A stretch of 64,000 nucleotides of DNA. It comes from Macrostomum hystrix. Lineage: Eukaryota > Animalia > Platyhelminthes. The position numbers and the translations under genes are program-made. Below the pieces are notes generated by a model. It ran no database searches and was not told where the DNA came from. It was given only the letters and a program-made list of their open reading frames with translations. This document shows positions 1,297 through 55,586 of the stretch, in pieces. How positions within the stretch are numbered: position 1 is the first letter of the stretch; every line of letters begins with the position of its first letter. The stretch covers positions 3,224,001-3,288,000 of the forward strand of contig CATNEN010000010.1 in the NCBI GenBank assembly GCA_950097015.1. The letters run 5' to 3'.

Positions 1297-1629
1297 CTAT
1301 TTTTTATGTTCTTCGCATCCAAATTTTTCTTTCGAAAATACAGTCAGATGTTTTTGGCCGTAGACACAAAAAACGGCTGCATATAATTCATATTGTATGC
1401 AGTATTTTTGCAAAAGTTCTTTAAGTAGCGTGGCCATATCTATGGTATTTTCGCGAATATAGCCAGACATTTCATCTATAATTAGTATTTGCGCACTGCC
1501 AAAAACTTTTTCGCGAAAGTACATACGTATTCTTAAGTCAAAACGACTATGATCGTTGACTACTTGAGATCTGTGCATATTGTGCCAGTGGTAAAAAGGT
1601 AAGAAGGCTCTTGTGGAAGACAGTATCAT
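1297..1629 (-). CDS. Hypothetical 110-aa ORF 'D'
   Basis: ORF track. A homologous segment recurs at 6640-6773 plus 12090-12160 and, degenerate, at 4230-4520. No recognised domain. A 1-nt difference in an A-run between copies makes the C-terminal frame uncertain. Confidence 0.35.
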   Translation of the reverse strand: MILSSTRAFLPFYHWHNMHRSQVVNDHSRFDLRIRMYFREKVFGSAQILIIDEMSGYIRENTIDMATLLKELLQKYCIQYELYAAVFCVYGQKHLTVFSKEKFGCEEHKK

Positions 1630-1642
1630 TAGCCATCGTTAC

Positions 1643-1714
1643 CATCGGGCCGTACGTTAGCCAGATTTCAGTTTTTTTCTGAAAGCTTTCATCTGGCTAA
1701 CGTACGGCCCGATG
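1643..1714. other. Hairpin 1: 24-bp perfect inverted repeat, 24-nt loop
   Basis: CATCGGGCCGTACGTTAGCCAGAT (1643-1666) is the reverse complement of 1691-1714. A 9-bp direct repeat CATTAGCCA flanks it at 1627 and 1725. Confidence 0.9.
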
Positions 1715-1737
1715 ATAATGTGAGCATTAGCCAGCCC

Positions 1738-1778
1738 TGCTCTGCACCCGGACATCCCCGCGTTTCAAAATATAAATA
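1738..1778 (-). promoter_or_regulatory. Conserved motif copy 1, adjacent to hairpin 1
   Basis: TGCTCTGCACCCGG-n-CGTTTCAAAATATAAATA, repeated at 1963-1999. It reads TATTTATA...CCGGGTGCAGAGCA on the minus strand. The regulatory role is inferred. Confidence 0.45.
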
Positions 1779-1817
1779 TACCGGACTGCTATGGTATTGT
1801 AGTGTATAGTGATTCGG

Positions 1818-1961
1818 TGTGACGGTTCAGTGGTTCACATACTGCGACATGTCACATACTGGTTGAACAGTATAATGTATTTTCGCGTCCTTCAACGGAA
1901 GCTGCTAAGATATCTGCTGGCTATGTGACATGTCGCAGTATGTGAACCACGAACCGTCACA
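1818..1961. other. Hairpin 2: ~40-bp inverted repeat (one bulge), ~63-nt loop
   Basis: TGTGACGGTTC(A)GTGGTTCACATACTGCGACATGTCACATA (1818-1858) pairs with 1922-1961. Confidence 0.9.
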
Positions 1962-1962
1962 T

Positions 1963-1999
1963 TGCTCTGCACCCGGTCACCCGTTTCAAAATATAAATA
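1963..1999 (-). promoter_or_regulatory. Conserved motif copy 2, adjacent to hairpin 2
   Basis: TGCTCTGCACCCGGTCACCCGTTTCAAAATATAAATA matches 1738-1778. Confidence 0.45.
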
Positions 2000-2081
2000 A
2001 ATAATAAACAAAAATAATTTAGTGTTTGTAATTTGTTTAATTGTTAATAGTACACAACTTCTTATCTTGTTTATTCTATCA

Positions 2082-2494: not shown

Positions 2495-3988
2495 TCAATT
2501 GCCGCACAGACATTGTCGCGTCTTGATCAATCGGCCGTGTCTTGACACTGTCGTAGTCAATATATTGTGTGTGCATATACAATACGAGCGTCTAGATGCA
2601 TGCAAAGCATCAGTCGCAGGTATAGTCGATTGCGATGACTGCACATCACTTAATGACATTGCGACATCGTCGTCAAGGTCGGCGGTCAGAACCAATTCTG
2701 CTGCGGCATCGGCATCTCCTTGCGGCACTGTCACATCAGATAGCTGTTCATCAGAATCGTTGTTGACATCAGCAATGATGATCTCCATTGCGACATCAAA
2801 CATATCATCGATGTGACTTGCTTCGGAATGGGCAGCGAAATCCGATCCAGCAGCAGCAGCAACACAATCCGTATTGGTAGACAGAAATTGCATAGCGGCA
2901 GGTTGCATCAAGTCGAGCAGAATCTGCGCCATTTCAATGTCATCACCGTGACCGGATGATGTACCAATACACACTGACTGCGTGCTGACATTGGCTTCGA
3001 TGGAAACATCGGTCACACCGTTTTGTGCACTGACACCAACTGTCGCTGTTGTTACTCTTGGCGCACAGACAGGAATAAAAACAGGTAGCGGCACCGGAAC
3101 GAAATACGGCACCTCGACAGTTGGAATCGGCAACATAGGCATCGCTGGTGATCCGATTGGCTCAATTTGCAAAATTGGCATTGATGGCGATGGTACTGGC
3201 GAGTGATCCGATTGGATTGTTTCTGCTGCTGCTTCAATCGCATTGTGATTAAGCGGAGTAGATGTACAAATTGGATGCCGTACTGATCCAATTGACACAC
3301 TGTCCGCTTGGCTCACATGTTCAGCAGGCTCGTCAGTACTTGTTGCATAGATGATGCCTGATTCAGCTGCGCTATCTTCTATGATGATAGTTTCTGCTGG
3401 CTGCTCTGCTGCTGACTGCTCTGCTGCTGGCTGCTCTGCTGATGGCTGCTCTGCTACTGGCTGCTCTGCTACTGGCTGCTCTGCTACTGGCTGCTCTGCT
3501 ACTGGCTGCTCTGCTGCTGGCAGTCGACGGGCAATGTAGCGCTCGTGCATATAGTCGATAATCTCGCCGACCACAGCTGGTAGTGGATCCAGTTGTTCAA
3601 GCTGGACCACTTCGCCCATTGCCGCTGCTCCCGCCACTGCCACTGGCTTAGCTGGTTGGCCACCGACGCGACGCTGCGGATTCCGCTTACATCTATATTG
3701 ATGATGCAACATGTTGGACGTTATTTTGTTGCAATGCGGACACGCTAGCACACGTCCACCGGCAGCGACATCTACACCAGCCCGCTGTAGTTGCAGCATC
3801 TTCCAGACGGCACTTCCACGCTCCTTAACCGACGCGAATAGCGATGGCCTTTGACCAACAGGTAGGACTGTCCAGTCAAATTCGGCATGGACAGCTTTAT
3901 GCGCCTCTATAAAATGTCTTCGCATCATATTGGCGCGGATTTGCTGGCCGCAGAAATGGCAGAAGCGGAGTCCGTTGTTGTCTTCCAT
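2495..3988 (-). CDS. Intronless 497-aa protein: N-terminal CxxC..H..H and CxxC..H..C zinc-finger pair, AEQP(V/S/A) pentapeptide repeats, acidic low-complexity region, Cys-containing tail
   Basis: Long ORF with ATG start. Motifs FCHFC...RRHFIEAH and CPHC...HHQYRC. 15-bp repeats at ~3395-3520. Confidence 0.75.
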   Translation of the reverse strand: MEDNNGLRFCHFCGQQIRANMMRRHFIEAHKAVHAEFDWTVLPVGQRPSLFASVKERGSAVWKMLQLQRAGVDVAAGGRVLACPHCNKITSNMLHHQYRCKRNPQRRVGGQPAKPVAVAGAAAMGEVVQLEQLDPLPAVVGEIIDYMHERYIARRLPAAEQPVAEQPVAEQPVAEQPVAEQPSAEQPAAEQSAAEQPAETIIIEDSAAESGIIYATSTDEPAEHVSQADSVSIGSVRHPICTSTPLNHNAIEAAAETIQSDHSPVPSPSMPILQIEPIGSPAMPMLPIPTVEVPYFVPVPLPVFIPVCAPRVTTATVGVSAQNGVTDVSIEANVSTQSVCIGTSSGHGDDIEMAQILLDLMQPAAMQFLSTNTDCVAAAAGSDFAAHSEASHIDDMFDVAMEIIIADVNNDSDEQLSDVTVPQGDADAAAELVLTADLDDDVAMSLSDVQSSQSTIPATDALHASRRSYCICTHNILTTTVSRHGRLIKTRQCLCGN

Positions 3989-4187
3989 TGCAGCTTAAAT
4001 ATAGTCGTTCGCTGGCTAGCCTGCTGAATAATCGACAGAGTGGTCGTTGTGGCTGAATTTTAATTATCGATTTGCGTGCGCGCGCGCATATATTTACCTA
4101 GCACTGCTCATATCCTGTACAGAGCAGCAGTCAGACACATAGACATAGACAGGCATCGTCAACTGGGTCTAAGCTATTTCCATATAT

Positions 4188-4500
4188 AGTATTTTCGCGA
4201 AAATACTGCTATGCTCTATAAACAAAGGTAAGGGCAGTATTTTTGCAAAAGTTCTTGAAGTAGTGTGCATGGCTACATCTTATGGTATTTTCGCGAAAAT
4301 ACTGCTATGCTATTAAACAAAGGTAGTTGGCGGTATTTTTGCAAAAGTTCTTAAAGTAGTGTGCGTGGCTACATCTTATGGTATTTTCGCGAAAATACTG
4401 CTATGCTATTAAACAAAGGTAGTTGGCGGTATTTTTGCAAAAGTTATTAAAGTAGGTAGTGTGCGTGGCTACATCTTATGGTATTTTCGCGAATGTAGAT
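4188..4500. repeat. ~96-bp tandem repeat carrying the perfect palindrome GTATTTTCGCGAAAATAC
   Basis: Palindrome at 4189, 4285 and 4381, with a partial copy at 4481. The unit shares sequence with ORF D (1400-1460). Confidence 0.85.
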
Positions 4501-5084: not shown

Positions 5085-5417
5085 TCATTGTTCGATGTAC
5101 CAGTAGCGAACTCCATGTATGATGAGCTGGAGTTCAGCTTGGGCGTCCTCAAAAAGCTCTAGCACTTCGATGATGTCTTGTGCTTCATCCTCTCTTATAC
5201 CAGTCACGGACAAGACAGCCTTATAGTCTTCTGCTGACCGGTGCTGTTGCAGCCATTCTTGAGTGCGCCGTAATAATAAGCATAACTCATTAGCGCTATA
5301 CTCAGCATTTGGAACACCGCGCTGCAAACTAGGTAGCTGCTCGAAGCACCCTCGATGCGCTATGAACCGGCCAATGCAATCTATGCGACAGCTGAGAAAG
5401 AGTTGAAATACGTGCGG
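5085..5417 (-). CDS. Terminal exon of orphan 'gene A', paralog 2 (110 codons plus stop)
   Basis: The frame is open from the TCTTCAG acceptor at 5418 to the stop at 5085. TACTAAC lies at plus 5453-5459 and is conserved in paralog 1. The upstream exon was not identified. Confidence 0.5.
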   Translation of the reverse strand, partial: PHVFQLFLSCRIDCIGRFIAHRGCFEQLPSLQRGVPNAEYSANELCLLLRRTQEWLQQHRSAEDYKAVLSVTGIREDEAQDIIEVLELFEDAQAELQLIIHGVRYWYIEQ

Positions 5418-6773
5418 CTGAAGATAACTGACTGAAGATGAAGGTTCAGTCAGTTAGTAAATCAAGCCAGCCTAAAGCAAAAAAAAATTTAAGTTATAAA
5501 AAATTTTTAAACTTGAATCAAAGTCCCCATAGAGTATATTTTATCAAACACAGGTAAGTCAGTCCACAAACAAATCAAATGAATACAGGCCAGTCTGGGT
5601 ATTAAGAACATGAAATATTTCTCGGCCAAGAAATCAGCCCACAACCAAATAAACAGCAGCAACAGCAGTAGCAGCCAGCAGTAGCAGCCAGCAGCAACAC
5701 CAGTAGCAGCCACCAGTAGCAACCATCAGCAACAGCAGTAGCCACCAGCAATAACACCATTAGCAGCGAGAAAATGAGTAAATTTCCGATGTTCCCGGCT
5801 GCGTTCCGCAAACACGTATTAGAAAGAGCTGCCGTGGAGTTAGAAGCAGCTTTGGAGGCTGCGAATGAAGCAGCGATTGCGGTGGCTGCAGCGGAGGCCT
5901 GGGCGCCGGGACGGCGCGTGGCGGAGGACGCGATGGCCGTAGCTATGCGACGGGTTAAGGCGGCCATGCTTCGCATGGCCAGGGCCCGTCGCATAGCTGA
6001 CGGGCTGGATCCCTATGTGAGTAGTAGCTTTTTAATTTTATTTTCATTTGAATATTTATTAACACATCTGATAACCGAGCTAACAAACTAAATGAAACCT
6101 AAAACCCATCTTTCATCCCGCAGCCGGGTGTGCTATGAGCCATGTGGCTGGCGAACTCTTGCAGCAGCACTGGGTTGTAGGGCACGACCCACCTAGCGTA
6201 GCGTAAGATTTGTTGGCAAAATCTAAAGTGACTATTCCCGAGTGCAGAGTTGCTGCTTGATAAATGCAGCTCAAAATGCACCTGACGGTTATTAGTTTTT
6301 ATAGTTTTCACAATAAATAACTTCTTATCTTGGTTATTTATTTTATCATTCAAATAATATGGTGTACATTGGCGATGAGACTTACTACAATAGCGACGTA
6401 ATCGTAATCGATCAGTCTGATATATAATTTCATGTAAAGTTTATACAAGTTCCTCATGTAAAAAACATTAATAATGACGAAGAACTTGAAAAAAGTAAAG
6501 TACAAACGACTAATAAATTATTACACGCTTACGTCTTGCTAGATATGCCAAGATGGGCAATTAAAACATGCAAACTGGGTATGTAGTGCATAAAATCGTG
6601 CGTATTTTAACATAGACATATCTGCTTGGTACAGCTCGATTTTTTCGCGATTTTATTCTTCGTATCCACATTTTTTCTTTCGAAAATACAGTCAGACGTT
6701 TTTGGCCATAGACACAAAAACGACTGCATATAATTCATATTGTATGCAGTATTTTTGCAAAAGCTCTTTAAGT
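5351..6773 (+). repeat. Diverged and rearranged duplicate of 1-~1426, continuing at 12090-12160 after the P element
   Basis: 5351 onward matches position 1 onward. 6085-6138 matches ~685-739, 6490-6773 matches ~1130-1426, and 12090-12158 matches ~1419-1488. Confidence 0.9.
5774..6138 (+). CDS. Orphan 85-aa protein 'gene B2', join(5774..6016,6124..6138)
   Basis: Paralog of B1 with 59/85 aa identical by hand alignment. Same GTGAGT donor, CCCGCAG acceptor and PGVL* terminal exon. Confidence 0.8.
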
Positions 6774-7288
6774 CACAGATTCTATATTACCTAGATTGGT
6801 CACTCCAAGAGAAATCGTTCGTTCATCGAAAACCCAGTGTTTTTGCCACAGACACGAGTTAAATACTGCGCATTAATATATCTTTTTAGTAAACTATGTT
6901 ATTTGCCTTTAACGCTAGGCGAGCCAATATTGAGAAATGACTTTTAATTGGAGAAAACGCGAGTAACAAATTTCTAAGCCGAATATTTATTGAATGCGCG
7001 GAACAATAAAACAAATAAAGATAACATGGTGATTAAACAAGCAAGTATGACAGGCAAGCATGACAGATAAGCATGACAAGCAAAAACAGTATTCAAGAAA
7101 GCGTGTCAAATAAGTAAAATAATGAAGCACAGTGAGTACCCTAACCATGCATCATTTCACAACTTCTTGAGCTTGCGGTTAGCAATAGCGCGATCTCTTT
7201 CCTTCCGCACAGTCTCCATCTTCTCTCGGCACCACTGATGCAATCGCATGTGCACAAAAAGCCTTGCCGCTTGTGCATTGCTTTCGGC

Positions 7289-10200
7289 TCAATGTTCGAT
7301 ACAAAATGGAAGCTGCACACTAAATCGCACAAATCTGCCGATGATTCTTGCCCCAATGGCATCAGCAGCTGCTGCTGTTGACATTTCTCGACGAAAAATC
7401 TCCTCTATCTTGCAGAATATCGCAACACACGCGCTCGACGGCTGAGTAAGGCCGTATCGAGAGTCTTCAAAGTTTTTGTGGGCGAAGATTCGAGCAGGTG
7501 ACTCGTCTGTTACCAACTGATCCTTACAGCTGTCGCATGCAAAAATTTGCAGCTTCCGAAAAATCCATCCTCCGATGTAAGGGATTACTTCAGTAGCCTC
7601 CACTTTGTCGAATGCAATTTCTGTTGCAACGTCTCCATCTGCAGAAACTGCCCGATTCTGCTGGGGCTGCTCTGCAGCTGAAGTTGATGCAGCCGTGACC
7701 TTCTCACGTAAGTCACGAATCTCAACTGCCATGGCATAACCATCGTCCTCACAGTTTGTGCCATTCGCAAGCTTGCGTTCCATTTTGCCAGCACTGATGG
7801 ATCGAAGTGCACCGAGAAACGCATGCAGTTCCGGCTTCTCGTTGAAGCCATTGCGGCCTCTCACCATGGAGAAAAAATTCTGCAGCAGAAACAAGAAAGC
7901 ATTAACACTATATGTAACAACTGAAAAGCATTTTCAGGCAGATACCTCGACATGATCCTGGGAAAGGCGTCGAAGGCACAAATACGACACACCAGCTTCC
8001 GTTAGACCAAATGAATGATGCGCTTCGCTGACTCGATAGAAAGCAGCAAGCCTTCTTTAAACGGCATGGCTGCCTTACTCCTTCCACCCCTCACAGGCGA
8101 GAATCGCCATGTCAAAATGAATTCTTGCGCTGCTGACAGCTGGCGCAGTACCATCTCAGCGGACTCTTCGGTAACTGCACCTTTTCCATGCTTGCCGAAT
8201 AAACTAGCAGAGTCAAGAATGTCAAACATCTCGTTTACTTTCTCCACAAACTCAGCTGTCTGCAGAGCGGACTTCTCCATTCGATCATTATCAACCAGAA
8301 CTCGCATGCCTCTCGCAACGGAATGTACGTCCAGTATGAAGTACACGGGCTCGCCTGTAGTTGGATGTGGGAAGCTTGGCTGCGGCAAGGAGACCGTCTT
8401 CTTGATGTGCGCCCACTGTGTAGGCTCTTGATCAGTCACCACTGCCTTCACACAAATTTCTGCTTCATTGGCGGCCTTCAGGCATTCGTTGATGGCAGCC
8501 TTGAATTCCGGTTGTTTTTGGCCGTGGTAGACAAAGTAGCAGGCGATGGGCTGTTTCCACGGGGCCGCGATGCCTCGCAGTTGTGCAACAATGGCCTGAT
8601 TCGCCGGCTTTGCATTTTCCAACGCCTCGAATCCTGAAGCCAGTCCAATAATTGCATCGCTATTCTTGTCAAACCTGACTGATGGAGAGATGCGCATTCC
8701 GTCCAGGCAGAGCGTAGCGATCTTCTCCTCCCTGGACTTTCGTGAAAAGTAGGTCTTCAGTTCAGAAATGGTGAAGCTGCAGACTCCGGTATCCGAAAAA
8801 AATAATCGAATTCTGCGCTTCAGAACTGTTTCGGATGGAAGCAGAAGGCCTGATTGCTTGCGTAAGAACCGATAAGCAGCAGGACTCAAGTGGTGAATCA
8901 CAATGGCTTCTCGCACCTGCTTGCGATTCCAGCGCATACCGCGATTTCGAATTCGGCGTGTGAAGTGGGTGCGGGTTTTTGCAATCCGATGACCTGTCCT
9001 CAAGAGAGAAGGGGAGTGTGGGAATGGCGATAGAGTTAGAAGTCATACCGCAAAGCCTCGCGATTTATCGCGGGGAGAGGGATGAAGGGAGAGATGAAGG
9101 GAGACAGTGGATGCAGGGAGTGGTCCTCTCGGCCTCAGGCTGGCCAGTCCCACTCAACCCATAGGCCACAGGCATGACTGCCGTGCCTACCCCAAGCAGT
9201 GCTCGAAACCGGCTAAAGTCTAAAGAGATATCGGACTACCCGCAAGCAGGTAGGACAGGGCTAGATAGCCTACTGTCATCAGTAGCATGTACATAACTGA
9301 CTCCTAACAGTGGTAGCAGTGGTCGATTCGGCCCAGGCTCTTGTCTTAGAAATGCGGAAAGGCTATTGGCAAAGCGGAAAATGATCTAGGGTAGCACCAC
9401 CACCCAATGCGCCTACGTTGCCACCGCAGACATTTGGGAACTTGGGTCCCCGGAGTTCACAGCTCCTAGTTTGTCACACAGATCTCAGACAAGCCGAAAA
9501 ATAGGGCATTCTGTAACTTCCGTTTTAGACTAGGGCTAAGACCCCAGAATGAATCGAGACACGCCTCAACAGGGGATTCCTGAAACAGCGCTACAGTGGT
9601 CTAGATAGGTGGTACTCCGAACTCGAATGAGAAACCCATAGCCGGAATCCTACTCATGAAACATCAGGCACATTCCTTACATTAGATTGCAGCCTGCACA
9701 GTAAATAACTAGCAAATCCGAATCTGTGTGAGATGAGGAGATCAGAGGCAGGAGAGGTTAAGCAGAGCACTGGCTGAGTGATTATGCAAGCGATGGTTAT
9801 TAGATCACACCCCTCGCTCCCATGGCGGCGGCAGCGAGAGGCGGGGAGCAGAAGGGAAACTTAATTGACAAGGGAGGTTGACACGCACTCCTTGATCCAC
9901 CAGAAAGAGAGGAAAAACCCGCCAAGGAATTTCCCCACCCCTAGCAGAGAAACACATGCTACGCTCCGCATATTACTCGCAAATCCCTAGCTCCTTATTA
10001 CTCTCATGCGCGCTCACAGTTGTCTTCCTGCCGCAGCTTTCAGCTCGGCATCACCAGAGCCCACCCCCTAATGAGTTAGCCGCTCATGATTGAGGGCTGT
10101 CTAACGATAAAATAAAGAGAAAAGAATAGCATGATAAAAAGGTTTGGTTGTTATTAAATTGGCCTAATTATTAAGGTTTGGCATATTGGTAATGAATAGT

Positions 10201-11903
10201 TTATTAGGCTAAAACACCGCCCTTGCCCAGATTGCCCCACTAGCTAAATAATAAATCCCTTAGGGATAACAATTAGTGTCCGCTACGCGGGTTACTTATC
10301 TGATGCTGGCTGACTTTGCTGCAGGCCGTCGCTCTCGCAGGGATGGGCAAATAAAAGGGGGAACGAGACAGGGAGTTGCTAAACACAGCTGGCAAGGGGC
10401 CAGGCTGCAAGGAGCTCGATGCTCAATTGGAGCTCACCCAAGGAGGTGGCTTATGCTTACGGGATCTAACAGGTATGTACCTGTAGTTATGCTCTGGAGC
10501 CTTAGGCTCAGGGGCTAAGTGCTAGACTAGAAGGGGGAGAGTCCACGGACCGAGTTCCGGGACCGGACACGGGAAGAAGGTCCAAAGGGAGGTTCGCAGG
10601 GAGGTTCGCAGGGAGGTCCGCAGGGCGGTCCGAGGGAAAAGGTTCCTCCAGGGGCAGCGCAGCGCGCTTTCTTAAATAGTCCTGCAGCTCCGTCAACCCC
10701 GCATCCATCAAAGCAACCCACATGCTCGCCAGCCTGTCAGCGAGGAATCGGGTCGGCATTATGCCACCCCAATCGCCCACTGAAGCGGCGGCGAGAATCG
10801 CCAGATGCCCCACTAGGAGCGTCTGCCGGCAGTCGGCCAATGATTGTGATCCCGCCGGGATATGGGAAGCGCAGGCGCCGACCTGCCTACAGTGTCGTTA
10901 CATGTATCTAAAGGGGGAAAGGTCATAATCGAGCTTCGGCTCGGGTTACAGTAAAGAAAAGGGGACATGAAGAATTAATGCTCACTCTAGACGCATGAGT
11001 GATCCCTACAATCTGATCGCGGTTTGGAGGGGAATTATGACCTAAACTAGTCCATACAGTATTGCTATGGCCGCGATCAGTCACTTCTACAGGAGACTAG
11101 ACAGATCCGAGGCAAGGGGAATCGGCGGCTACTTAATTCACCTCCGCCCCAAGCCCGGCCCTAAGATTAATGATTGTGTTCTGCGGCCAGCTGCTATGTG
11201 GGTCGCGATTATTTGACTACTAAAAATTGGAAAAATTATGCTGGCTCACACTCCCACTCGATTCCCGCAGCACACTCCACATCACGTGTTGCAACTTTCT
11301 GGTGTTCAGAAGTGGCAGTTAAAGCTCTTTGAAGCTTCTGCGTTAATCTCTTGATGACTCCATCTCGATATCGAGCTCTATCCCGCTGTTTCTTCCGCTC
11401 CTTTCGAACTTCGTTGCGGTTGTTTGTTGCCCTATCTTCTGAACCAGTTTTATCCTGAGCGTCGGCTGGCATTGCGTGTAGCTCAGGCATCTCGACAGCG
11501 TACGTGTCTTCGCGATGCAGTACTGGTGGATACATGTCGTCAGCAATGTGGTCTGGTCGCGGCTCGACTTCAACCGATTCCTTCTCCAAGCGTGGTGGAA
11601 AAGTGTAGGGATTTGGAAGGGCATCTTTTCTAAGTCGAGCTGAACGTCGTTCGTGTAGTGGGCAGGAGTAATCGGTTTCTTTAAATGCAGACTGCACACT
11701 TTCAGCCTCCGCTGCCGCACAAAATTCAAGTCAACATCGCGTAATTCAAGTATCTCTATCCAACGAACTGCTACCTGGTCATCGCTTGGATATTTGCGTA
11801 CATGGACTGCAAATCCATGCACTGAAGCTGGAGTCTCCTCTGTAGTATAGCAGGCAGCTGCACAACAAGCGTGGCTACTAAGACGGTTGATGATCAGCTC
11901 CAT
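7289..11903 (-). pseudogene. Disrupted THAP/P-element transposase
   Basis: THAP domain (CCAAAC..YP..W..VCSLH / RLRKDALP) at 11236-11903, frameshifted near 11683. Catalytic-region motifs CLDGM and VTDQE at 8002-9003. Frameshift near 8005-8015, then YLCLRRLSQDHVE, an intron (7880-7945) and NFFSMVRGRNG. Confidence 0.9.
9004..11235. other. Unidentified 2.2-kb GC-richer segment inside the transposase (large intron or nested insertion)
   Basis: It separates the THAP exon from the catalytic exon. It holds short ORFs with no recognised domain, and no TIR or TSD was resolved. Confidence 0.4.
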
Positions 11904-12161
11904 GGCTAACGTGCGAAGCAGCAGCTCACAGCCAGCGAGTTTTGAGCGAGCGATAGACCATCAAATAAATTTTCTATCTGTCTAACTGTCTATGGGCAAA
12001 AACTCTGGGTTTTCGCGGCAGACGGCTGGCGGACGCAGTTTCTATTGCAAATTCGATGAGTGACCAATCTAGGTAATATAGAATCTGTGCTTTAAGTAGC
12101 GTGGCTATATCTATGGTATTTTCGCGAATATAGCCAGACATTTCATCTATAATTAGTATAT

Positions 12162-32816: not shown

Positions 32817-35318
<2,502 letters not shown>

Positions 35319-40057: not shown

Positions 40058-43000
40058 TCAGGAAGCATCAGTCTCCAGAAGGTCATCGGGCAGCACCACC
40101 GGCAGGCTCTTCTGGGTGCGGACGGCTGCCTCGCCAGCTAGCCTATAGGTCAGCGAGAAGGCCAGGCTCTTCTCGGCCGGGTCCAGCACCAGCAGGCACT
40201 GGGTGATAGGCGCGGCGGCCGGCAGCATCGGCGAGCTCGCCGGCAGGCTGAAGCCGCTGGGTGCCTGAGTCAACACCGAGTTGGGCTCGCGCCGGCAGGT
40301 CACGGTCAGGGTCACGTCCTCGCAGGCCTGTCATGCGCAATTTAAATTAGAAACAGACGCTAAATACGCCTCAGGCACTGATAGAAATAGACACTTCAGG
40401 CACATAGGAACGATATGAAAATGCAACATGACTCAGACTTCATTTCTATGACCCAGACTTCATTTCTATGACCGAGACTTCATTTCTATGACTGAGACTT
40501 CATTTCTATGACCCAGACTTCATTTCTATGATCAATTATGCTTCCTTTCTGAAGTGCCGGGGTTTGAATGATTGAACCGTGAACTGTGTTGAGCAAGTGA
40601 ACTGTGGGTTGATCTGCAGGCCTGCGCGCCAGCCGCACTCTGACCCAATGTACGCAGCCTGAATATTGATTATTGATGTACGCAACACCTGTTGACTTTT
40701 AAGCCCTGTTGACTATCGACTTATATATATATGCAAGTGTATCGTGAAACATCGTGACTAATAAACTAAATTCGCTACTAACCCAAACCAAGCCTACGGG
40801 CAGTCTTGCCTTATATTCCTGGGCACGGCTTAACACTTTCTATGATCAAGGCTTCATTTCTATGACCCTGAATTCATTTCTATCCCTTTGTTCAATGGAT
40901 CCAGACTTTGTTTCTATGACCTATGCCTCATTCTATGATCAATGCTGCATTCTATGACCAATACTTCATTCTGTGAGCAATCCTTCATTCTATGACCAAT
41001 CCTTCATTCTATGACCAATGATTTATAGTGTGAGCAATCCTTCATTATATGACCAATGCTTCCTTTCTATGATCAAGTCTATGACCATATGGCCAAGGTA
41101 TATGGCCAAGGCTTCATTGTGATGACCAGCTGAGGCTCACCTGGCCAAGTGTCGATGCGACAGCGCAGAGAAGTGCGGCAACACCGGGCGCTGGTGAGCA
41201 GGCGGTTTGGGCGAAGTGTAGCATGACGGTCACGTGACCAGCGCCGGGGCCGCCCGGCTCGCTTTGAATCACCGGCTGTGGCGAATAGGCCGGATGCGGC
41301 CGCAGAGAGGCCACGGACATTGGGGGTAGGCTGGTCAGGCGGCTGCGAAAGCCAGTGGGAATGCTGATCTGACATTTCACTTCGCTACATTGGTTCTTCA
41401 GAGCTGGGATATTTCTTTCCCCATACCAATCTGTCTTTCTCCCCATACCAAACTGTCTTTCTCCCCATACCAATCTGTCTTTCTCCCCATACCAAACTGT
41501 CTTTCTCCCCATACCAATCTGTCTTTCTCCCCATACCAATCTGTCTTTCTCCCCATACCAAACTGTCTTTCTCCCCATACCAATCTGTCTTTCTCCCCAT
41601 ACCAATCTGTCTTTCTCCCCATACCAAACTGTCTTTCTCCCCATACCAATCTGTCTTTCTCCCCAATACCAAACTGTCTTTCTCCCCATACCAATCTGTC
41701 TTTCTCCCCATACCTATCTGTCTTTCTCCCCATACCAAACTGTCTTTCTCCCCATACCAAACTGTATTTCTCCCCATACCAAACTGTCTTTCTCCCCATA
41801 CCAAACTGTCTTCCACCCCATACCAAACTGTCTTTCTCCCCATACCAAACTGTCTTTCTCCCCATACCATACTGTCTTCCACCCCATACCAATCTGTCTT
41901 TCTCCCCATACCATACTGTCTTTCTCCCCAATACCAAGCTGTCTTTCCCCAATACCAAACTGTCTTTCTCCCCAATACCAAACTGTCTTTCCCCAATACC
42001 AAACTGTCTTTCTCCCCAATACCAAACTGTCTTTCTCCCCAATACCAAACTGTCTTTCCCCAATACCAAACTGTCTTCCTCCCCATACCAAACTGTCTTT
42101 CTCCCCAATACCAAACTGTCTTTCCCCAATACCAAACTGTCTTTCCCCAATACCAAACTGTCTTTCTCCCCAATACCAAGCTGTCTTTCCCCAATACCAA
42201 ACTGTCTTTCTCCCCAATACCAAACTGTCTTTCCCCAATACCAAACTGTCTTCCTCCCCATACCAAACTGTCTTTCTCCCCAATACCAAACTGTCTTTCC
42301 CCAATACCAAACTGTCTTTCTCCCATGCCTATCTGTCACCCTCCTTCACACCCAAGTGTATTTCTGAGTATAATAAATTAAAAGTACAAAGATTGTCCAC
42401 ACTGTGCGTACCTGTCCACGCCGTTGCTGGCGGCCGCTGAAGAGGCGGTCGAGGCGGCAGGCCGCGAGGTCGCGAAGCCATCATCAGTCTTTCCATTACT
42501 GGCTGCGGACAGCAATGAAGCGATCGAAGACGAATCAGCAGCAGCGGCAGCCGCCGACTTCTTCGGACTCTGTCGCATGAGAAAGTCTTTGCCCAGCTGG
42601 TCCAAGCCTTTGAACACGGCGCTCTCGGCAGCGGCAGAGGACGCCTGCAGCTGCGTGCCAGACGACTGCTTGCTGGGATTCAGCGCCAGGTTCGGCACGG
42701 CTGCGGCGGGCTTGGCTGAGCCGGTGCCGCCGACGACACCGCCGCCGCCTTTGATCGGCACCATAGGAGCGATGCCGACGCGCTGAGTCGACGGCCCCAC
42801 TGAAGCTGTTGACGAGAACAGATCGCTCAGCAAGTCGATATCGCCGCTTCCGCTGGCCGATGAGACAGGCATCGGGATGCTGGACTTAAATACGGAGGAG
42901 GCGGAGCTAGGTGCAGCCGAATAGGCGGGGGGCAGGTCCGGGAGGTCGAGGATGCTACCGCCAGCAGCAGTGGAAGCGGGGGCGCCAGTTGTGGGCGGTC

Positions 43001-46000
43001 GATAGCCCAGCGGATCAAATGGGTCGAATGCCACGTCACCAATTAGGAGGCCGCTGCCGAGGGAGGTAGACGATGAGGCAGTCGTCGTGGGCGATGCGGG
43101 CACCGCCGCTGGTGTAGTTGTTGATGCCGCCGAAGCCGCCTCCTTCAGCTGGTCTTCGCCAACCAGTTCAGCGCATCGACGCAGAATCTCGGCGGCCAGA
43201 TCGTTGACAGCCAGGACCTCCTTCATTGACTCCTCGTCGGTGGTCTCCGTCTCGCCGGCCAGCCTGTAGAGCCGGGGTCGGGCCTCACGGAGGGTTCGGT
43301 GCAGCTCGCGAATGATCTCCAGGTCGCTCTGGGCCGCCTCAGATGGTCTGAAGTGGTTGAGCATCTCGCTGAGCAGCTGGGCATTGCTGCGCACAGTTTC
43401 CAGCTCCTCCAAGCGTTTGGAAAGCCGGTCCATGCGCTCGCTGTCCTGCTTCACCACGGACTTGATGAGCCGGTTGGCCGCCATCAGGTCCTCGGGCCGC
43501 TTGGATCTTGGGAGGATAAGACAGGGAATGACAGGATTAGGATATGAGCACTGCATACACATGATGGAGTCCCACTCACTTCAGTAGTCGGCTGATTTCC
43601 TGAGCAGTTTTGTCGTCATTGAAGATCGCGGCATCCTTGCCTCTCTTCAATGGCAAATAGGGATTGGAACGCAGTGTCTGGTCGATGTAGACCGGGTCCT
43701 TGGTGATTATGCCCTGCTTCTTAAGCATCTCGTAGGCCTCTCGAATCTTAGGCTCTGAGTAGAGACCCCGAGACCAGCCGTACAGGCACTCGGTGCACCG
43801 CTTCTTCACTGACTCGCTGGACGTGGCGCCCAGGTACTTCGGCGACAGGATCTTGATGATCTGGACAACGAAGATTGTGAGTGAAGCTTGCGAATTTGCG
43901 AATTTAAACAGCCTGGGAATCAATTAAACCAATTTAGCGATCTGGGGAGAGGGCGGATCACACTCGGGATCTGGGGAGAGGGCGGATCACACTCGGGATC
44001 TGGGGAGAGGGCGGATCACACTCGGGATCTGGGGAGAGGGCGGATCACACTCGGGATCAAGGGAGAGGGCGGATCACACTCGGGATCAAGGGAGAAGGCG
44101 GATCACACTCGGGATCTGGGGAGAGGGCGGATCACACTCGGGATCTGGGGAGAGGGCGGAGCACACTCGGGATCTGGGGAGAGGGCGGATCACACTCGGG
44201 ATCTGGGGAGATGGCGGATCACACTCGGGATCTGGGGAGATGGCGGATCACACTCGGGATCTGGGGAGAGGGCGGATCACACTTGGGATCTGGGGAGAGG
44301 GCGGAGCACACTCGGGATCTGGGGAGAGGGCGGATCACACTCGGGATCTGGGGAGAGGGCGGATCACACTCGGGATCTGGGGAGAGGGCGGATCACACTC
44401 GGGATCTGGGGAGAGGGCGGAGCACACTCGGGATCTGGGGAGAGGGCGGATCACACTCGGGATCTGGGGAGAGGGCGGATCACACTCGGGATCTGGGGAG
44501 AGGGCGGATCACACTCGGGATCTGGGGAGAGGGCGGATCACACTCGGGATCAAGGGAGAGGGCGGATCACACTCGGGATCTGGGGAGAGGGCGGAGCACA
44601 CTCGGGATCTGGGGAGAGGGCGGAGCACACTCGGGATCTGGGGAGAGGCCGGATCACACTCGGGATCTGGGGAGATGGCGGATCACACTCGGGATCTGGG
44701 GAGACGGCGGATCACACTCGGGATCTGGGGAGAGGCCGGATCACACTCGGGATCTGGGGAGAGGGCGGATCACACTCGGGATCTGGGGAGAGGCCGGATC
44801 ACACTCGGGATCTGGGGAGAGGGCGGATCACACTCGGGATCTAGGGAGAGGGCGGATCACACTCGGGATCAAGGGAGATGACGGATCAGACTGGGGATCT
44901 GGGGAGATGACGGATCAGACTGGGGATCTGGGGAGATGACGGATCACAATGGGGATCTGGGGAGATGACGGATCAGACTGGGGATCTGGGGAGATGACGG
45001 ATCAGACTGGGGATCTGGAGATGGCGGATCAGACTGGGGATCTGGGGAGATGGCGGATCACACTCTGGATCTGGGGAGATGGCGGATCACACTGGGGATC
45101 TGAGGAGACGGAGGATCACACTCGGGCTCTGAGTAGATGGGGATGGCATATTTATCGTGGAATATGGGAAGATTGCGGAATCGGACTATTGATCCCTGAC
45201 CCTGATAGTGGCAGGACATAAATTCATTTGATGAGCCTTACCTCTAGAAGGATTTAATATCATTGATTAAATCATAAATCAAACATCAAGCTACGCCTCG
45301 CAATCAACTTAGGTAACTGGTCAATCACCTCATTAAGAAAGCGGAATTTTCCTAGCTCCTGGTGAAACACGGGACCACAGTTGCGCACACAGGCCTCAGT
45401 AACAGCCAAAGCATAGAGAGCCTCATTCTCCTGCGGACTCTGAATCTTGTGAGCCAGCAGGCGCAGGGCTATCTGCGGCCCCTCCAGCTCCTTGCTGACT
45501 TGCTGGCTGAACCGATTGACAGCGTCCCAGTTGATCTCTCGATTTGTCGGGTCTGTGGCTCGATCTGGGTGCGGGTGCCAATGTGGGTCAATCGAGTGCG
45601 CAAAAGATCTTTTACAAACAAGAATAAGATAAATTTTACAGTCAAAATACAGCTAAGTTTCTGCAATTTATTACTTTATTTTAAGTTAAGCAATTTAGTT
45701 GTTTAAAAATATTCAATCTCCTGAATATCCTGAAGATAAAGGAGCTCAAGAGATCCTGCCTAGGCCTACTGAGAAGCTAGAATGTTTAAGAAATAAGCCT
45801 TAAGTATATATATAACAAACCGGGCTTACTGGACATAAATCCTATAAAATAGTTCCAGTTTTAGTAGGTTCATAAATCTCTGACTATGGGAGGATTTTAG
45901 GAGTGCTGAGTTCAAACATGAAATCCATTTTGTTCCATATGCAACCACCTTCTATGGAATGCTTTACCATCACAGGATGACCCCACTTAGTTGGACATTG

Positions 46001-47389: not shown

Positions 47390-48950
47390 TTCTGAATCTA
47401 AGTGATCCTGGTTATTAGAGATTAGAGACTTCTCATATTACGATATATGTGTACGAAGAAATCAAATATAATACAGCTCGGTTATACTGCTAAGATAACT
47501 GTATATAAAAAATTACTATGTACTATTATGTAGTATATAAGAGTCAATACCTATCCGCAATAAATGTGAAGTATAATTTGAAGGTGTTTACTCAGTGATT
47601 TTTATTTAAGATTTCTTAGATTTTACGGAAATCTAAGCCACTGAAACTTAAAATGTTCGATTATAGACAAAAGTTTATAACACGTCAACACAACAGAACG
47701 CCGAATGGGAACTCTGTTTCTTCGAAAAGAACATTTAAATTTAAGCATTGGTAACTTACTTAAATAAAAGACTAATCAGAATAATTATTTATTTTACACA
47801 GAAAACACATGTTATTAACATATTTTTCATATTTTGTATTTTTTAGCTTCTAATTTTGATATCATAATTTTTTAATATCCACTTAATTAAATTGCTTCAT
47901 TGCGACAAATTATGAATGAACGGAGACAAATGAAACTCAATCGTTATGAAGCGGTATGCAATTTTGATATAAGTAGCAATATAGCAATTGTTAGCGCTCT
48001 TGTGCCAAAACCTGCAGCCTAACTTATTGTAAGTGCGATTAATATTAGTTGGCCGGTTGAACGCAAGTAAGGTTTAATTAGTTAATAATATAATATTTGG
48101 TTCCATGAAAGGGAAAAACTTTAAGTTCAAGTGCTACAAGTGTTCAGATTATCTATATCAGGCGCGGATCATCACTGAGACGAGTGGGCGGGCGAGACGC
48201 GGTGAGGTAACGTACGGAAAGGATGACTGAGCTCAAAGCATGTTTATTATAGTGTCCTGGTCATTAAGTGAATAAAATTTCCTGCAAAAAAATTAATACG
48301 ATCATGTGTACGCATGGAAATTAGCCAATCAGAAAGCAACTTTAAAGTCAGTACCAGGTGCTACTTTGCAATCACAAAAGAAAGAATACGATTTCGCAAA
48401 ATGCCCATAAATACAAATGTATAGTAATTAAAGTATTCATACAATTAATATTTAGCATACATGTTATTATGAAGAATAATACAAAAATAGATCGATTACC
48501 AGAAATATACTACAACGATTGAAACACACTGTCACATCATTTACATTTACATTTACATTTACATTAATGCATAAATATACAAAATACTCATCGTGTGTGC
48601 TACTTTTGGTGTCTTCCAAATTAAGAAGAACGTTTGCTGCACACATTGAATATCGGCCCCGAATGTCCAAGCAGTTTTAAAAAACAATTAAAAGCGGTTT
48701 TAAGCGTCATGGATCTCCCTTTTGCCCGCCGCCGAGCGTCTATGTTTTCAATTGTTTCCCTATAGGTGAATAAATCGTTTATTTCCTGTGGACCAGCGGG
48801 CGGAACATATTTGACAATACACCGTCTCAGAGTCTATGCTCCGTCATTTTTTAAAGCAAAGTATATTGTCAATGGCTGTGACCGAGGACGCGCAGCGCGC
48901 AGCGCCCGAGGCCATAGACATTGATGCCCGAAATAGCCGGTATATATTTT

Positions 48951-49072
48951 CATTGAGCAACGCTGGGATTCCCAGCGGTTCTGTTTGCACCATACACATT
49001 CCACCGGGGTTTTAATGTCGTCCATTAAAACCCCGCGGTATTTAATGGCGGGAATCCCAGCGTTGCTCAATG
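48951..49072. other. Nested foldback element (23-bp outer and 13-bp inner inverted repeats)
   Basis: 48951-48973 pairs with 49050-49072, and 49005-49017 pairs with 49023-49035. Confidence 0.8.
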
Positions 49073-49094
49073 ATCGAAAATACACACTTAACGT

Positions 49095-49129
49095 CAGGGA
49101 CAACTAAAACCCTGTTTTAGTTGTCCCTG
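49095..49129. mobile_element. 35-bp TIR-only micro-element with an 8-bp TSD (hAT- or P-type)
   Basis: CAGGGACAACTAAAAC-cct-GTTTTAGTTGTCCCTG, flanked by CTTAACGT at 49087-49094 and 49130-49137. Confidence 0.75.
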
Positions 49130-49825
49130 CTTAACGTTTGAAATACAAGAATCCAAAGGGAATTCCCTGTGGGATTCCCCATAGACATAGTTTAACGATG
49201 TTCATTAAAACCCTTGCTCAGCGTTGTTAAATGGTATATTGTTAATCACGCTAACATTAATTAATTGCATGGGCTGAATAAATCGGAACAGCTACCATAG
49301 ACTAACGCCCGTTGCGATTGCGGGGAGGTACATACCATACTTCCGATTAGTTTTGTTGTCTATGGGCATATATACGCTCAAGGCGACTCATTTATTGACA
49401 AAGTCTTTTCTCAGGCTTCACATTTCACATAGAAAATTCAGATCGCACATTTTAAAAGGCTTGATCAACCAAAAATCGCACGTTGTATCTACCTGCCAAT
49501 TCGACTAACTGGGATTCGAAGAGTCCGAATCATAAGATCGTTGATTTAAAATATTCGGAATTGGAATCAAAGCTGCATGCAATTTTTTTGTTTGAGTTGA
49601 GACTCGAAGATTTGGGAACTACGAGTATAATAGTTGTATTCGAAGGAATGGGACTCAAGAATTCTAAGATGAGACTGGTAAACATTTTTCGGATTTAATA
49701 TTGAATTATAGACCATGTAGTGTTTTGAAATATGACGATTTGGGCTCATCGAACAAACGGGATTAAATGGGTGTGAGATGATTAGATTTTAGATATATGA
49801 AGAAAGTGGGATCAAGTGGTGGGGA

Positions 49826-52800
49826 TTCGAGTATTTGGGATTCGAGTAGTTGGGATTAGAGTAGTCGGGATTCGAGTATTTGGGATTTGAGTAGTTGGGA
49901 TTCGAGTATTTGGGATTTGAGTAGTTGGGATTCGAGTATTTGGGATTCGAGTAGTCGGGATTCGAGTATTTGGGATTCGAGTAGTTGGGATTAGAGTAGT
50001 CGGGATTCGAGTATTTGGGATTTGAGTAGTTGGGATTCGAGTATTTGGGATTTGAGTAGTTGGGATTCGAGTATTTGGGATTCGAGTAGTTGGGATTAGA
50101 GTAGTCGGGATTCGAGTATTTGGGATTTGAGTAGTTGGGATTCGAGTATTTGGGATTCGAGTAGTGGGGATTCGAGTAGTGGGGATTCGAGTATTTGGGA
50201 TTTGAGTAGTGGGGATTCGAGCAGTGGGGATTCGAGTAGTTGGGATTCGAGTAGTTGGGATTCGAGTAGTTGGGATTCGAGTAGTTGGGATTCGAGTAGT
50301 TGGGATTCGAGTATTTGGGATTTGAGTATTTGGGATTCGAGTAGTTGGGATTTGAGTAGTTGGGATTTGAGTAGTTGGGATTAGAGTAGTCGGGATTCGA
50401 GTATTTGGGATTTGAGTAGTTGGGATTCGAGTATTTGGGATTAGAGTAGTCGGGATTCGAGTATTTGGGATTCGAGTATTTGGGATTTGAGTAGTTGGGA
50501 TTCGAGTAGTTGGGATTCGAGTAGTTAAGATTCGAGCAGTGTGGATTCGAGCAGTGGGGATTCGAGCAGTGGGGATTCGAGCAGTGTGGATTCGAGCAGT
50601 GGGGATTCGAGTAGTTGGGATTCGAGTATTTGGGATCGAGTATTTGGGATTCGAGTAGTGGGGATTCGAGCAGTGGGGATTTGAGTAGTTGGGATCGAGT
50701 ATTTGTGATTCGAGTAGTTGGGATTCGAGTAGTTGGGATTCGAGTATTGGGGATTCGAGTAGTGGGGATTCGAGTAGTTAAGATTCGAGCAGTGGGGATT
50801 CGAGCAGTGGGGATTCGAGCAGTGGGGATTCGAGCAGTGGGGTTTCGAGTATTTAAGATTCGAGCAGTGGGGATTCGAGCAGTGGGGATTCGAGTAGTGG
50901 GGATTCGAGTATTTGGGATCGAGTATTTAAGATTCGAGTAGTGGGGATTCGAGCAGTGGGGATTCGAGTAGTGGGGATTCGAGTAGTGGGGATTCGAGTA
51001 GTTAAGATTCGAGCAGTGGGGATTCGAGCAGTTAAGATTCGAGCAGTGGGGATTCGAGTAGTTGGGATTCGAGTATTGGGGATTCGAGTAGTGGGGATTC
51101 GAGTAGTTAAGATTCGAGCAGTGGGGATTCGAGCAGTGGGGATTCGAGCAGTGGGGATTCGAGCAGTGGGGTTTCGAGTATTTAAGATTCGAGCAGTGGG
51201 GATTCGAGCAGTGGGGATTCGAGTAGTGGGGATTCGAGTAGTGGGGATTCGAGTAGTTAAGATTCGAGCAGTGGGGATTCGAGTAGTTAAGATTCGAGTA
51301 GTGGGGATTCGAGTAGTTAAGATTCGAGCAGTGGGGATTCGAGCAGTGGGGATTCGAGCAGTGGGGATTCGAGCAGTGGGGTTTCGAGTATTTAAGATTC
51401 GAGCAGTGGGGATTCGAGCAGTGGGGATTCGAGTAGTGGGGATTCGAGTATTTGGGATCGAGTATTTAAGATTCGAGCAGTGGGGATTCGAGTAGTGGGG
51501 ATTCGAGTAGTGGGGATTCGAGTAGTGGGGATTCGAGTAGTTAAGATTCGAGCAGTGGGGATTCGAGCAGTGGGGATTCGAGTAGTGGGGATTCGAGTAG
51601 TTGGGATTCGAGTATTTGGGATTCGAGTAGTGGGGATTCGAGTATTTAAGATTCGAGTAGTGGGGATTCGAGTAGTGGGGATTCGAGTAGTGGGGATTCG
51701 AGTAGTGGGGATTCGAGTAGTGGGGATTCGAGTATTTAAGATTCGAGCAGTGGGGATTCGAGCAGTGGGGATTCGAGTAGTGGGGATTCGAGTAGTGGGG
51801 ATTCGAGTATTTGGGATTCGAGCAGTGGGGATTCGAGTAGTGGGGATTCGAGTATTTGGGATTCGAGTATTTGGGACTCGAGTATTCGGGATTCGGGTAG
51901 TTGGGATTTGAGTAGTTGGACTCGAGTATTTGGGATTCGAGTAGTGGGGATTCGAGTAGTGGGGATTCGAGTAGTGGGGATTCGAGTAGTGGGGATTCGA
52001 GTATTTGGGATTTGAGTAGTTGGGATTCGAGTATTTGGGATTAGAGTAGTTGGGATTTGAGTAGTTGGGATTCGAGTAGTTGGGATTAGAGTAGTCGGGA
52101 TTCGAGTATTTGGGATTTGAGTAGTTGGGATTCGAGTATTTGGGATTAGAGTAGTCGGGATTCGAGTATTTGGGATTCGAGTATTTGGGATTTGAGTAGT
52201 TGGGATTCGAGTATTTGGGATTAGAGTAGTCGGGATTCGAGTATTTGGGATTCGAGTATTTGGGATTTGAGTAGTTGGGATTCGAGTATTTGGGATTAGA
52301 GTAGTCGGGATTCGAGTATTTGGGATTAGAGTAGTTGGGATTCGAGTATTTGGGATTAGAGTAGTTGGGATTTGAGTAGTTGGGATTCGAGTAGTTGGGA
52401 TTAGAGTAGTCGGGATTCGAGTATTTGGGATTTGAGTAGTTGGGATTCGAGTATTTGGGATTAGAGTAGTCGGGATTCGAGTATTTGGGATTCGAGTATT
52501 TGGGATTTGAGTAGTTGGGATTCGAGTATTTGGGATTAGAGTAGTCGGGATTCGAGTATTTGGGATTCGAGTATTTGGGATTAGAGTAGTCGGGATTTGA
52601 GTAGTTGGGATTCGAGTATTTGGGATTTGAGTAGTTGGGATTCGAGTATTTGGGATTAGAGTAGTCGGGATTCGAGTATTTGGGATTCGAGTATTTGGGA
52701 TTTGAGTAGTTGGGATTCGAGTATTTGGGATTTGAGTAGTTGGGATTCGAGTATTTGGGATTTGAGTAGTTGGGATTCGAGTATTTGGGATTAGAGTAGT

Positions 52801-55517: not shown

Positions 55518-55586
55518 CGAAGCCTTATCTTATCCATCAAGCAAGCCTCACTAATGCTCTAATGTTTGCACAAGTTCGCCACGCGG

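Follow-up and report, generated by a model that had tools for sequence, protein, structure and literature searches.

Two described systems close to the locus reported here are Made1 MITEs and the hairpin-RNA loci of Drosophila. Made1 MITEs, from which the human mir-548 family arose, are 80-bp palindromes made of two 37-nt arms and a 6-nt centre, and their transcripts are able to fold into a pre-miRNA-like hairpin (PMC1784062). The hpRNA/endo-siRNA loci of Drosophila are near-perfect inverted repeats that occur in tandem clusters in D. simulans, and the arms of hpRNAs have about 200 bp of homology to the target gene (PMC10317233).

The window analysed here, which is the whole stretch of 64 kb, contains a cassette in which two hairpins are combined with two copies of a bipartite motif (Table 1). 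The geometry of hairpin 1 is identical to that of Made1 (80 bp, 37-nt arms and 6-nt centre), a likeness of geometry, with none expected in sequence. Made1, however, derives from mariner and exists in thousands of copies, whereas the window shows a single copy of hairpin 1. Mariner elements, Made1 included, produce a target duplication of TA, in contrast to the 9-bp repeat of hairpin 1, which is set 3-6 nt from the arms. With Mutator-type (MULE) MITEs, hairpin 1 has in common that its palindromic body is non-coding and that a 9-bp direct repeat flanks it; unlike in these elements, its inverted repeat stops short of the boundary of the flanking repeat, and hairpin 2 has no such repeat. Neither a MULE transposase nor any other copy was seen in the window.

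As in the hpRNA loci of Drosophila, several near-perfect inverted repeats are found together, apparently young, among fast-evolving duplicated or orphan genes and with signs of birth by inverted duplication. Unlike in those loci, the arms of the cassette measure 24-40 bp and have no match of at least 12 nt in the window, the one hint being a match of 14/17 to the stop-codon region of a paralogous gene. Nematode type-I piRNA loci, which form dense clusters with an upstream (Ruby) motif, were considered as a further candidate, as in both units the + strand has a GTTTCA core with an AT-rich tract after it and, 42-43 nt downstream, a YRNT-like TAGT. The candidate was rejected: the motif is not enriched in the window, CTGTTTCA being found 1 and 2 times on the two strands, with an AT-rich context only at the two cassette sites, and nothing suggests a nematode.

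Table 1. Positions in the window of the cassette features and of the local duplications around them.
Feature	Position	Strand	Description
Hairpin 1	1639-1718	.	80-bp palindrome; arms 1639-1675/1682-1718, 37 nt each; 6-nt centre
Left CATTAGCCA copy	1627-1635	.	9-bp direct repeat flanking hairpin 1; candidate target-site duplication
Right CATTAGCCA copy	1725-1733	.	9-bp direct repeat flanking hairpin 1
Motif copy 1	1738-1778	.	Box a 1738-1751, variable 1752-1760, box b 1761-1778
Possible box c1	1796-1814	.	TAGTGT core, in register with 2017-2033
Hairpin 2	1818-1961	.	Arms 1818-1858/1922-1961; 11+29 bp; bulged A at 1829
Motif copy 2	1963-1999	.	Box a 1963-1976, variable 1977-1981, box b 1982-1999
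Possible box c2	2017-2033	.	From ~2026 homologous to 6289-6428 of the neighbouring paralogous copy
Local duplication	1-740 ~ 5351-6139	+	Holds the two-exon orphan gene
Local duplication	1124-1488 ~ 6483-6773 + 12087-12159
Local duplication	2026-2186 ~ 6289-6428

The cassette exceeds chance. When inverted repeats were searched for in the window with arms of at least 24 nt at 86-100% complementarity, three were found in the 64 kb, two of them inside the cassette, and the chance that two of the three fall within 330 nt is 0.03. Folding of both strands, proposed as a check in a first-pass annotation of this DNA, placed the 390-nt stretch far better than its shuffles on each of them (z of -11.5 and -14.4). 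The same annotation had described, at 1627-2000, a constant motif paired twice with a different hairpin, and both the coordinates and the exactness of the boxes agree with the present analysis; its stems of 24 bp and about 40 bp were recovered as the 24-bp perfect core of hairpin 1 and the 29+11-bp arms of hairpin 2.

The arms of hairpin 1 are 86% complementary over 37 nt and include the perfect core (1643-1666/1691-1714), and the predicted folding of the 89-nt element is -57.4 (+) / -54.9 (-) kcal/mol. A 9-bp direct repeat stands on both sides of the palindrome, which is what an insertion would leave. Because shuffled sequence gives about 5 same-spacing 9-mer repeats per 16 kb x 31 spacings, the chance of finding a 9-bp repeat that brackets hairpin 1 within a dozen bases is about 1e-3. 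This repeat had been named beforehand as a possible target-site duplication that would speak against hairpin-RNA genes, and it is indeed present; membership of a dispersed family finds no support in the 64-kb window. The inverted repeat is separated from the 9-bp repeats by 3 nt on the left and 6 nt on the right and does not reach their boundary. A MITE is expected to have a target-site duplication of fixed length and terminal inverted repeats that reach its ends. Multiple dispersed copies are a defining property of a MITE, and no second copy of either hairpin was found within the 64-kb window, which is a weak test of dispersal. A separate proposal, that hairpin 1 is a mirtron with GT...AG ends, was rejected because the splice-site matches, judged by eye, were poor.

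Hairpin 2 has perfect inner arms of 29 bp (1830-1858/1922-1950) and, past a 1-nt bulge, outer arms of 11 bp (1818-1828/1951-1961), making a stem of 40 bp in total with a loop of 63 nt and a predicted folding of -87.9 / -82.7 kcal/mol. Its loop holds, at 1877-1887, the 11-mer GTATTTTCGCG, which recurs locally: the window has 10 exact sites and a further 2 that differ by one mismatch, 12 in all against about 1 expected, and 11 of the 12 fall between 1.4 and 12.1 kb, most of them in the 96-bp tandem array at 4185-4493. This local recurrence suggests that hairpin 2 was assembled from local sequence and not imported. Its right arm (1920-1936) also matches, at 14 of 17 positions, the paralogous orphan gene around its stop codon (6132-6148), a marginally significant likeness (p 0.01-0.04), roughly collinear with the downstream homology, that may serve as a lead and falls short of a finding. 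With this marginal exception, homology of the motif or of hairpin 2 to the paralogous copy at 6100-6330 was not significant (p 0.1-0.5), nor, past the common 11-mer, did the hairpins show significant homology to segment B or the 96-bp repeat.

Each motif copy is composed of 14 nt, 5-9 variable nt and 18 nt. Box a, the 14-mer TGCTCTGCACCCGG, and box b, the 18-mer CGTTTCAAAATATAAATA, are exact in both copies, and the spacer between them has 9 variable nt in copy 1 versus 5 in copy 2. The motif copies are young too, because their boxes are 32/32 identical and the sole difference between the copies is a CACCC(G) mini-repeat prone to slippage. Apart from one chance match inside a coding region, no further copies of box a or box b were found in the 64 kb with up to 2-3 mismatches. 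When the flanks of the two units were compared after excising the hairpins, there was no likeness upstream and a marginal one downstream, where the in-register 6-mer of the possible box c has a p of about 0.05.

The statement that each hairpin abuts the motif holds for hairpin 2, which lies 1 nt from motif copy 2, but not for hairpin 1, which is separated from motif copy 1 by a 19-nt gap that includes the right-hand CATTAGCCA. As the two motif copies bracket the segment 1779-1962, the arrangement can equally be read as hairpin 2 flanked by direct repeats, with hairpin 1 inserted just upstream of the first of them. This segment of 184 bp consists of a 39-nt lead-in plus hairpin 2 and is bordered exactly by motif copies at both ends. 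No short target-site duplication was found at hairpin 2, the sole bracketing repeats being the motif copies of 37-41 nt.

In both hairpins the perfect arms (24 bp; 29+11 bp) are exact reverse complements whose cores lack wobble or compensatory pairs, the G-U pairs being confined to predicted peripheral extensions. Selection at the RNA level tolerates wobble pairs and mismatches, and the exact arms point to recent DNA copying as their likely source and not to RNA-level selection. Because all the paired arms are exact reverse complements, a DNA-level origin of the hairpins is suggested.

The explanation that we prefer, to which we give an even chance of being right, is that the cassette consists of young, non-genic palindromic products of insertion or duplication without a dedicated function. 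We base it on the exact arms, the insertion-type repeat, the bracketing by the motif copies, the mosaic context, the lack of a target or family and the presence of only two units. The cassette would then be a young DNA-level repeat structure, of insertion or template-switch origin, in an intergenic stretch rich in duplications and transposons. Hairpin 1 would be an 89-bp palindromic MITE-like insertion, or an internally deleted transposon remnant, with a 9-bp target duplication around it; hairpin 2 would be a small inverted duplication (40-bp arms, 63-nt spacer) within the 184-bp segment, and the motif copies would be the direct repeats that flank this segment, not a promoter or leader. Were there any read-through transcription, both palindromes would fold to dsRNA and could feed Dicer as a by-product. 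Such a cassette would be an ordinary case of hairpin-forming DNA piling up in transposon-rich regions.

Some of the features fit this preferred explanation poorly. Two of the three long palindromes lie so close together, and each on the same side of its motif copy, that independent accidents explain them badly. The inverted repeat of hairpin 1 falls short of the boundary expected from its 9-bp repeat, and dispersal of the hairpins is unsupported in the window. A flanking repeat of about 40 nt would be unusual for a transposon insertion, and hairpin 2 has no shorter one. In addition, a consensus TATA box lies within the motif, and the downstream geometry is sensible whichever strand is read.

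Searches for RNA families, targets and copies were carried out as well. No Rfam family reached its gathering score in the whole window, and no credible match was found in 1400-2300 at the E-value threshold. The best sub-threshold matches, of 45 and 32 bits where 130 and 90 would be required, were to miRNA models from plants or animals, and sub-threshold generic miRNA-precursor models matched both strands. An animal miRNA is recognised by a known family or a conserved imperfect stem; conserved pre-miRNAs have imperfect stems, and those of the cassette are exact. An hpRNA or endo-siRNA locus is recognised by Dicer-dependent small RNAs of 21-22 nt that derive from one discrete primary transcript and by arms that are antisense to a target gene or transposon; for the arms, only the marginal 14/17 match was found within the window. 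Neither hairpin has a match of at least 12 nt elsewhere in the window on either strand, and thus no target was found among the neighbours in cis. When the motif and both stem arms were searched for in viral, metagenome and prokaryote-genome collections, there were zero matches, and a literature search with the motif strings also gave zero.

Against this background, the proposal of the first-pass annotation, a promoter-driven tandem array of hairpin-RNA genes, is doubted because there are only two units, no Rfam family, no target in the window, exact arms and a 9-bp repeat of the insertion type. The sole positive evidence for such an array is a TATA-like geometry that fits both strands and cannot tell whether the array is real. 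A TATA element can be read at the AT-rich end of box b in both directions, as TATAAATA on the + strand or as TATTTATA on the - strand, and a promoter is possible on either strand, with the two indistinguishable by sequence. Taken together, the features of promoter geometry are not decisive. A scan for bacterial promoters and terminators was uninformative for a eukaryote. Hairpin-RNA genes, when both strands are combined, are in our judgement doubtful, though far from negligible.

On the - strand, each motif copy would act as core promoter and leader of one of two hairpin-RNA genes, with TATTTATA as its TATA element and a start near GCAGAGCA; a short, mostly hairpin transcript would then give siRNA- or miRNA-like RNAs, and the promoter could be Pol III type-3-like or Pol II. 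We consider such a pair of - strand genes unlikely. In unit 2, the distance from the first T of TATTTATA down to the A of GCAGAGCA (CA; box a) is 31 nt, as such genes would have it, but the predicted start differs by 4 nt between units on account of the variable spacer. T runs of 4 or more are absent from both hairpins on the - strand, whereas the + strand loops have T7 and T4, and the first - strand T-runs after the hairpins are found at 1770-1767 and 1597-1593 (T4/T5), implying transcripts of about 200 and 155 nt. The absence of T4 from 150-200 nt has nevertheless a chance expectation of about 1/3. A Pol III type-3 (U6-like) unit is characterised by a PSE near -55 and a TATA box near -30, with a T-run terminator behind the RNA. 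The TATA-like element and the T-runs of the - strand would suit a Pol III-type unit, and the candidate box c lies in both units 17 nt upstream of the - strand TATA element, where a proximal sequence element would be; its significance is marginal (p ~0.05). Rfam found no snRNA gene in the window by which the PSE of the host could be defined.

Tandem clusters of near-perfect hairpin RNAs are known in Drosophila simulans (PMC10317233), which favours the - strand genes. Several points count against them: there are only two units, the motif recurs nowhere else in the window, the opposite strand has the best TATA consensus (8/8), and target homology in the window and an Rfam match are lacking. Their arms, of 24-40 bp, would also be far below the roughly 200 bp of homology in the arms of described hpRNAs (PMC10317233), and the exactness of the arms argues for youth and not for a maintained function.

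A related proposal, which we find rather doubtful, is that the cassette is a newly born, minimal cluster of two short hairpin-RNA genes, in which a portable core promoter of about 40 nt was copied beside unrelated fresh palindromes. One palindrome would in that case be MITE-derived and the other an inverted duplication of local sequence. If true, the birth of endo-siRNA or miRNA-like genes would have been caught in an orphan-gene cluster of a non-model animal. Transcription from the motif would represent the earliest stage of hairpin-RNA gene birth, in which a promoter module is joined to arbitrary new palindromes, a question now approached mainly in Drosophila simulans.

It was also considered whether the motif could be a module at or near the termini of one family of non-autonomous transposons, with the hairpins as variable internal palindromes and the cassette as two adjacent or nested truncated elements, which we regard as quite unlikely. 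The third long palindrome of the window, at 48950-49073, resembles motif copy 1: its left arm and outer flank align with the motif copy and its next 7 nt over 30/39 columns, and it is the top non-self match of this query in the window, with a score of 28 versus a null of 20 +/- 2.2. This weakly hints that motif-like sequence may form palindrome arms itself, like a transposon end. The similarity is nonetheless marginal, as a second, unrelated AT-rich match scores 27 and the alignment rests on 9 nt that are missing from motif copy 2. Helitrons have a 3' terminus with a hairpin, CTRR within about 6-12 nt and insertion before T, a 5' TC end and a Rep/helicase partner. Along with the 9-bp flanking repeat, the transposon module is favoured by the pattern that follows hairpin 1 on the - strand, where 6 nt, CTAA and a T resemble a Helitron 3' end. 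There is, by contrast, no CTRR at hairpin 2, no Helitron 5' end, transposase or Rep/helicase partner was recognised near the cassette, where the ORF 1297-1629 has no Pfam match, and the 64 kb contain no more copies.

In the palindrome-rich patch around this third inverted repeat (48937-49240), a 13-bp hairpin is nested in a perfect inverted repeat of 24 bp, a perfect hairpin of 16 bp lies beside it (49095-49129), and both GGGAWTCCC palindromes and CCATAGAC occur repeatedly.

On the + strand, each motif copy would be a TATA-containing Pol II core promoter (CACCC-type boxes, TATAAATA and an initiator-like TAGTGT). Copy 1 would produce a polyadenylated RNA of about 220 nt, mostly hairpin 2, and copy 2 a non-coding transcript through 2020-2190. 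We hold this to be very unlikely. TATAAATA matches the TATA consensus at 8/8 positions, the A of TAGTGT is found 30 nt (unit 1) and 29 nt (unit 2) downstream of its first T, and AATAAA occurs just after hairpin 2, at 1996 and 2003, where it would end the first transcript. The pairing of motif and hairpin would however be lost, as hairpin 1 would have no promoter and copy 2 no hairpin. TAGTGT is marginal, and in unit 2 it falls where the sequence in common with the 3' region of the paralogue begins, a place where it cannot be an initiator; in addition, no coding potential was found downstream.

A function at the DNA level, in which cruciforms beside an AT-rich element would form a replication origin, a recombination/nicking site or a protein-binding insulator, is extremely improbable: long exact palindromes do adjoin AT-rich tracts, and a nearby cluster of the E2F-site-like palindrome TTTCGCGAAA has one member in the loop of hairpin 2, but there is no common loop motif of the rolling-circle nickase type, no associated replication gene and no comparative support, and the base rate of such functions is low among random palindromes.

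The first 12 kb of the window are a mosaic of local duplications, and the cassette sits in the copy-1 part 1489-2025, with no significant counterpart in the other paralogous copy. The two-exon orphan gene of this region is a tandem duplicate on the + strand (357-737 and 5774-6136), with 72-82% identical DNA; its exon 1 ends in a GTGAGT donor, the intron has about 120 nt and exon 2 encodes PGVL followed by the stop. The homology between both gene copies stops just past the stop codon. A P-like DNA transposon (6774-12089), whose terminal inverted repeats measure 32 bp, interrupts the second copy of the local repeat and is flanked by an 8-bp target duplication, CTTTAAGT, at 6766-6773 and 12090-12097. 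The - strand ORFs of this transposon encode a THAP domain (11343-11903) and TNP-like RNase H / GTP-binding domains (8002-9003, 7289-7894). A Tc1-like transposase remnant is also present in the window.

The cassette follows, at a distance of about 500 nt, the stop codon of an orphan ORF of 497 aa (2495-3988, - strand). This ORF has two N-terminal CxxC...H zinc-knuckle-like motifs and an internal AEQPV repeat, for which a 15-bp minisatellite codes (3394-3521). A search of about 15 billion proteins recovered no homologue, the matches being of low complexity plus two weak ones, one of which is a CxxC...H zinc-knuckle-like repeat protein; exact look-ups of this and ten other ORFs of the window in protein collections gave no match. 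At 200-500 nt upstream of the ORF is the 96-bp tandem repeat (3.2 copies), which carries the palindrome GTATTTTCGCGAAAATAC, enclosing the E2F-site-like TTTCGCGAAA; further sites lie at 1445, 1512, 1877 and 12116.

The window is nuclear animal DNA, unlike that of human, and no tRNAs were detected in it. Further along, two coding exons were recognised on the - strand. The first, at 33671-34552, is an intronless exon of 293 codons for a DYRK1/minibrain-type kinase, with about 72% identity to its best matches across animal phyla, on a long unplaced branch and with a catalytic loop HSDLKPEN instead of the usual HCDLKPEN; this divergent exon may belong to a fast-evolving paralogue or be a retrocopy. 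The second is a GGA exon (42378-43562), with which a further search gave no match. Minisatellites are abundant throughout the window, with many of period 9-57 nt in addition to a 15-bp minisatellite at 49807-55520 that has about 381 copies and a strong GC skew.
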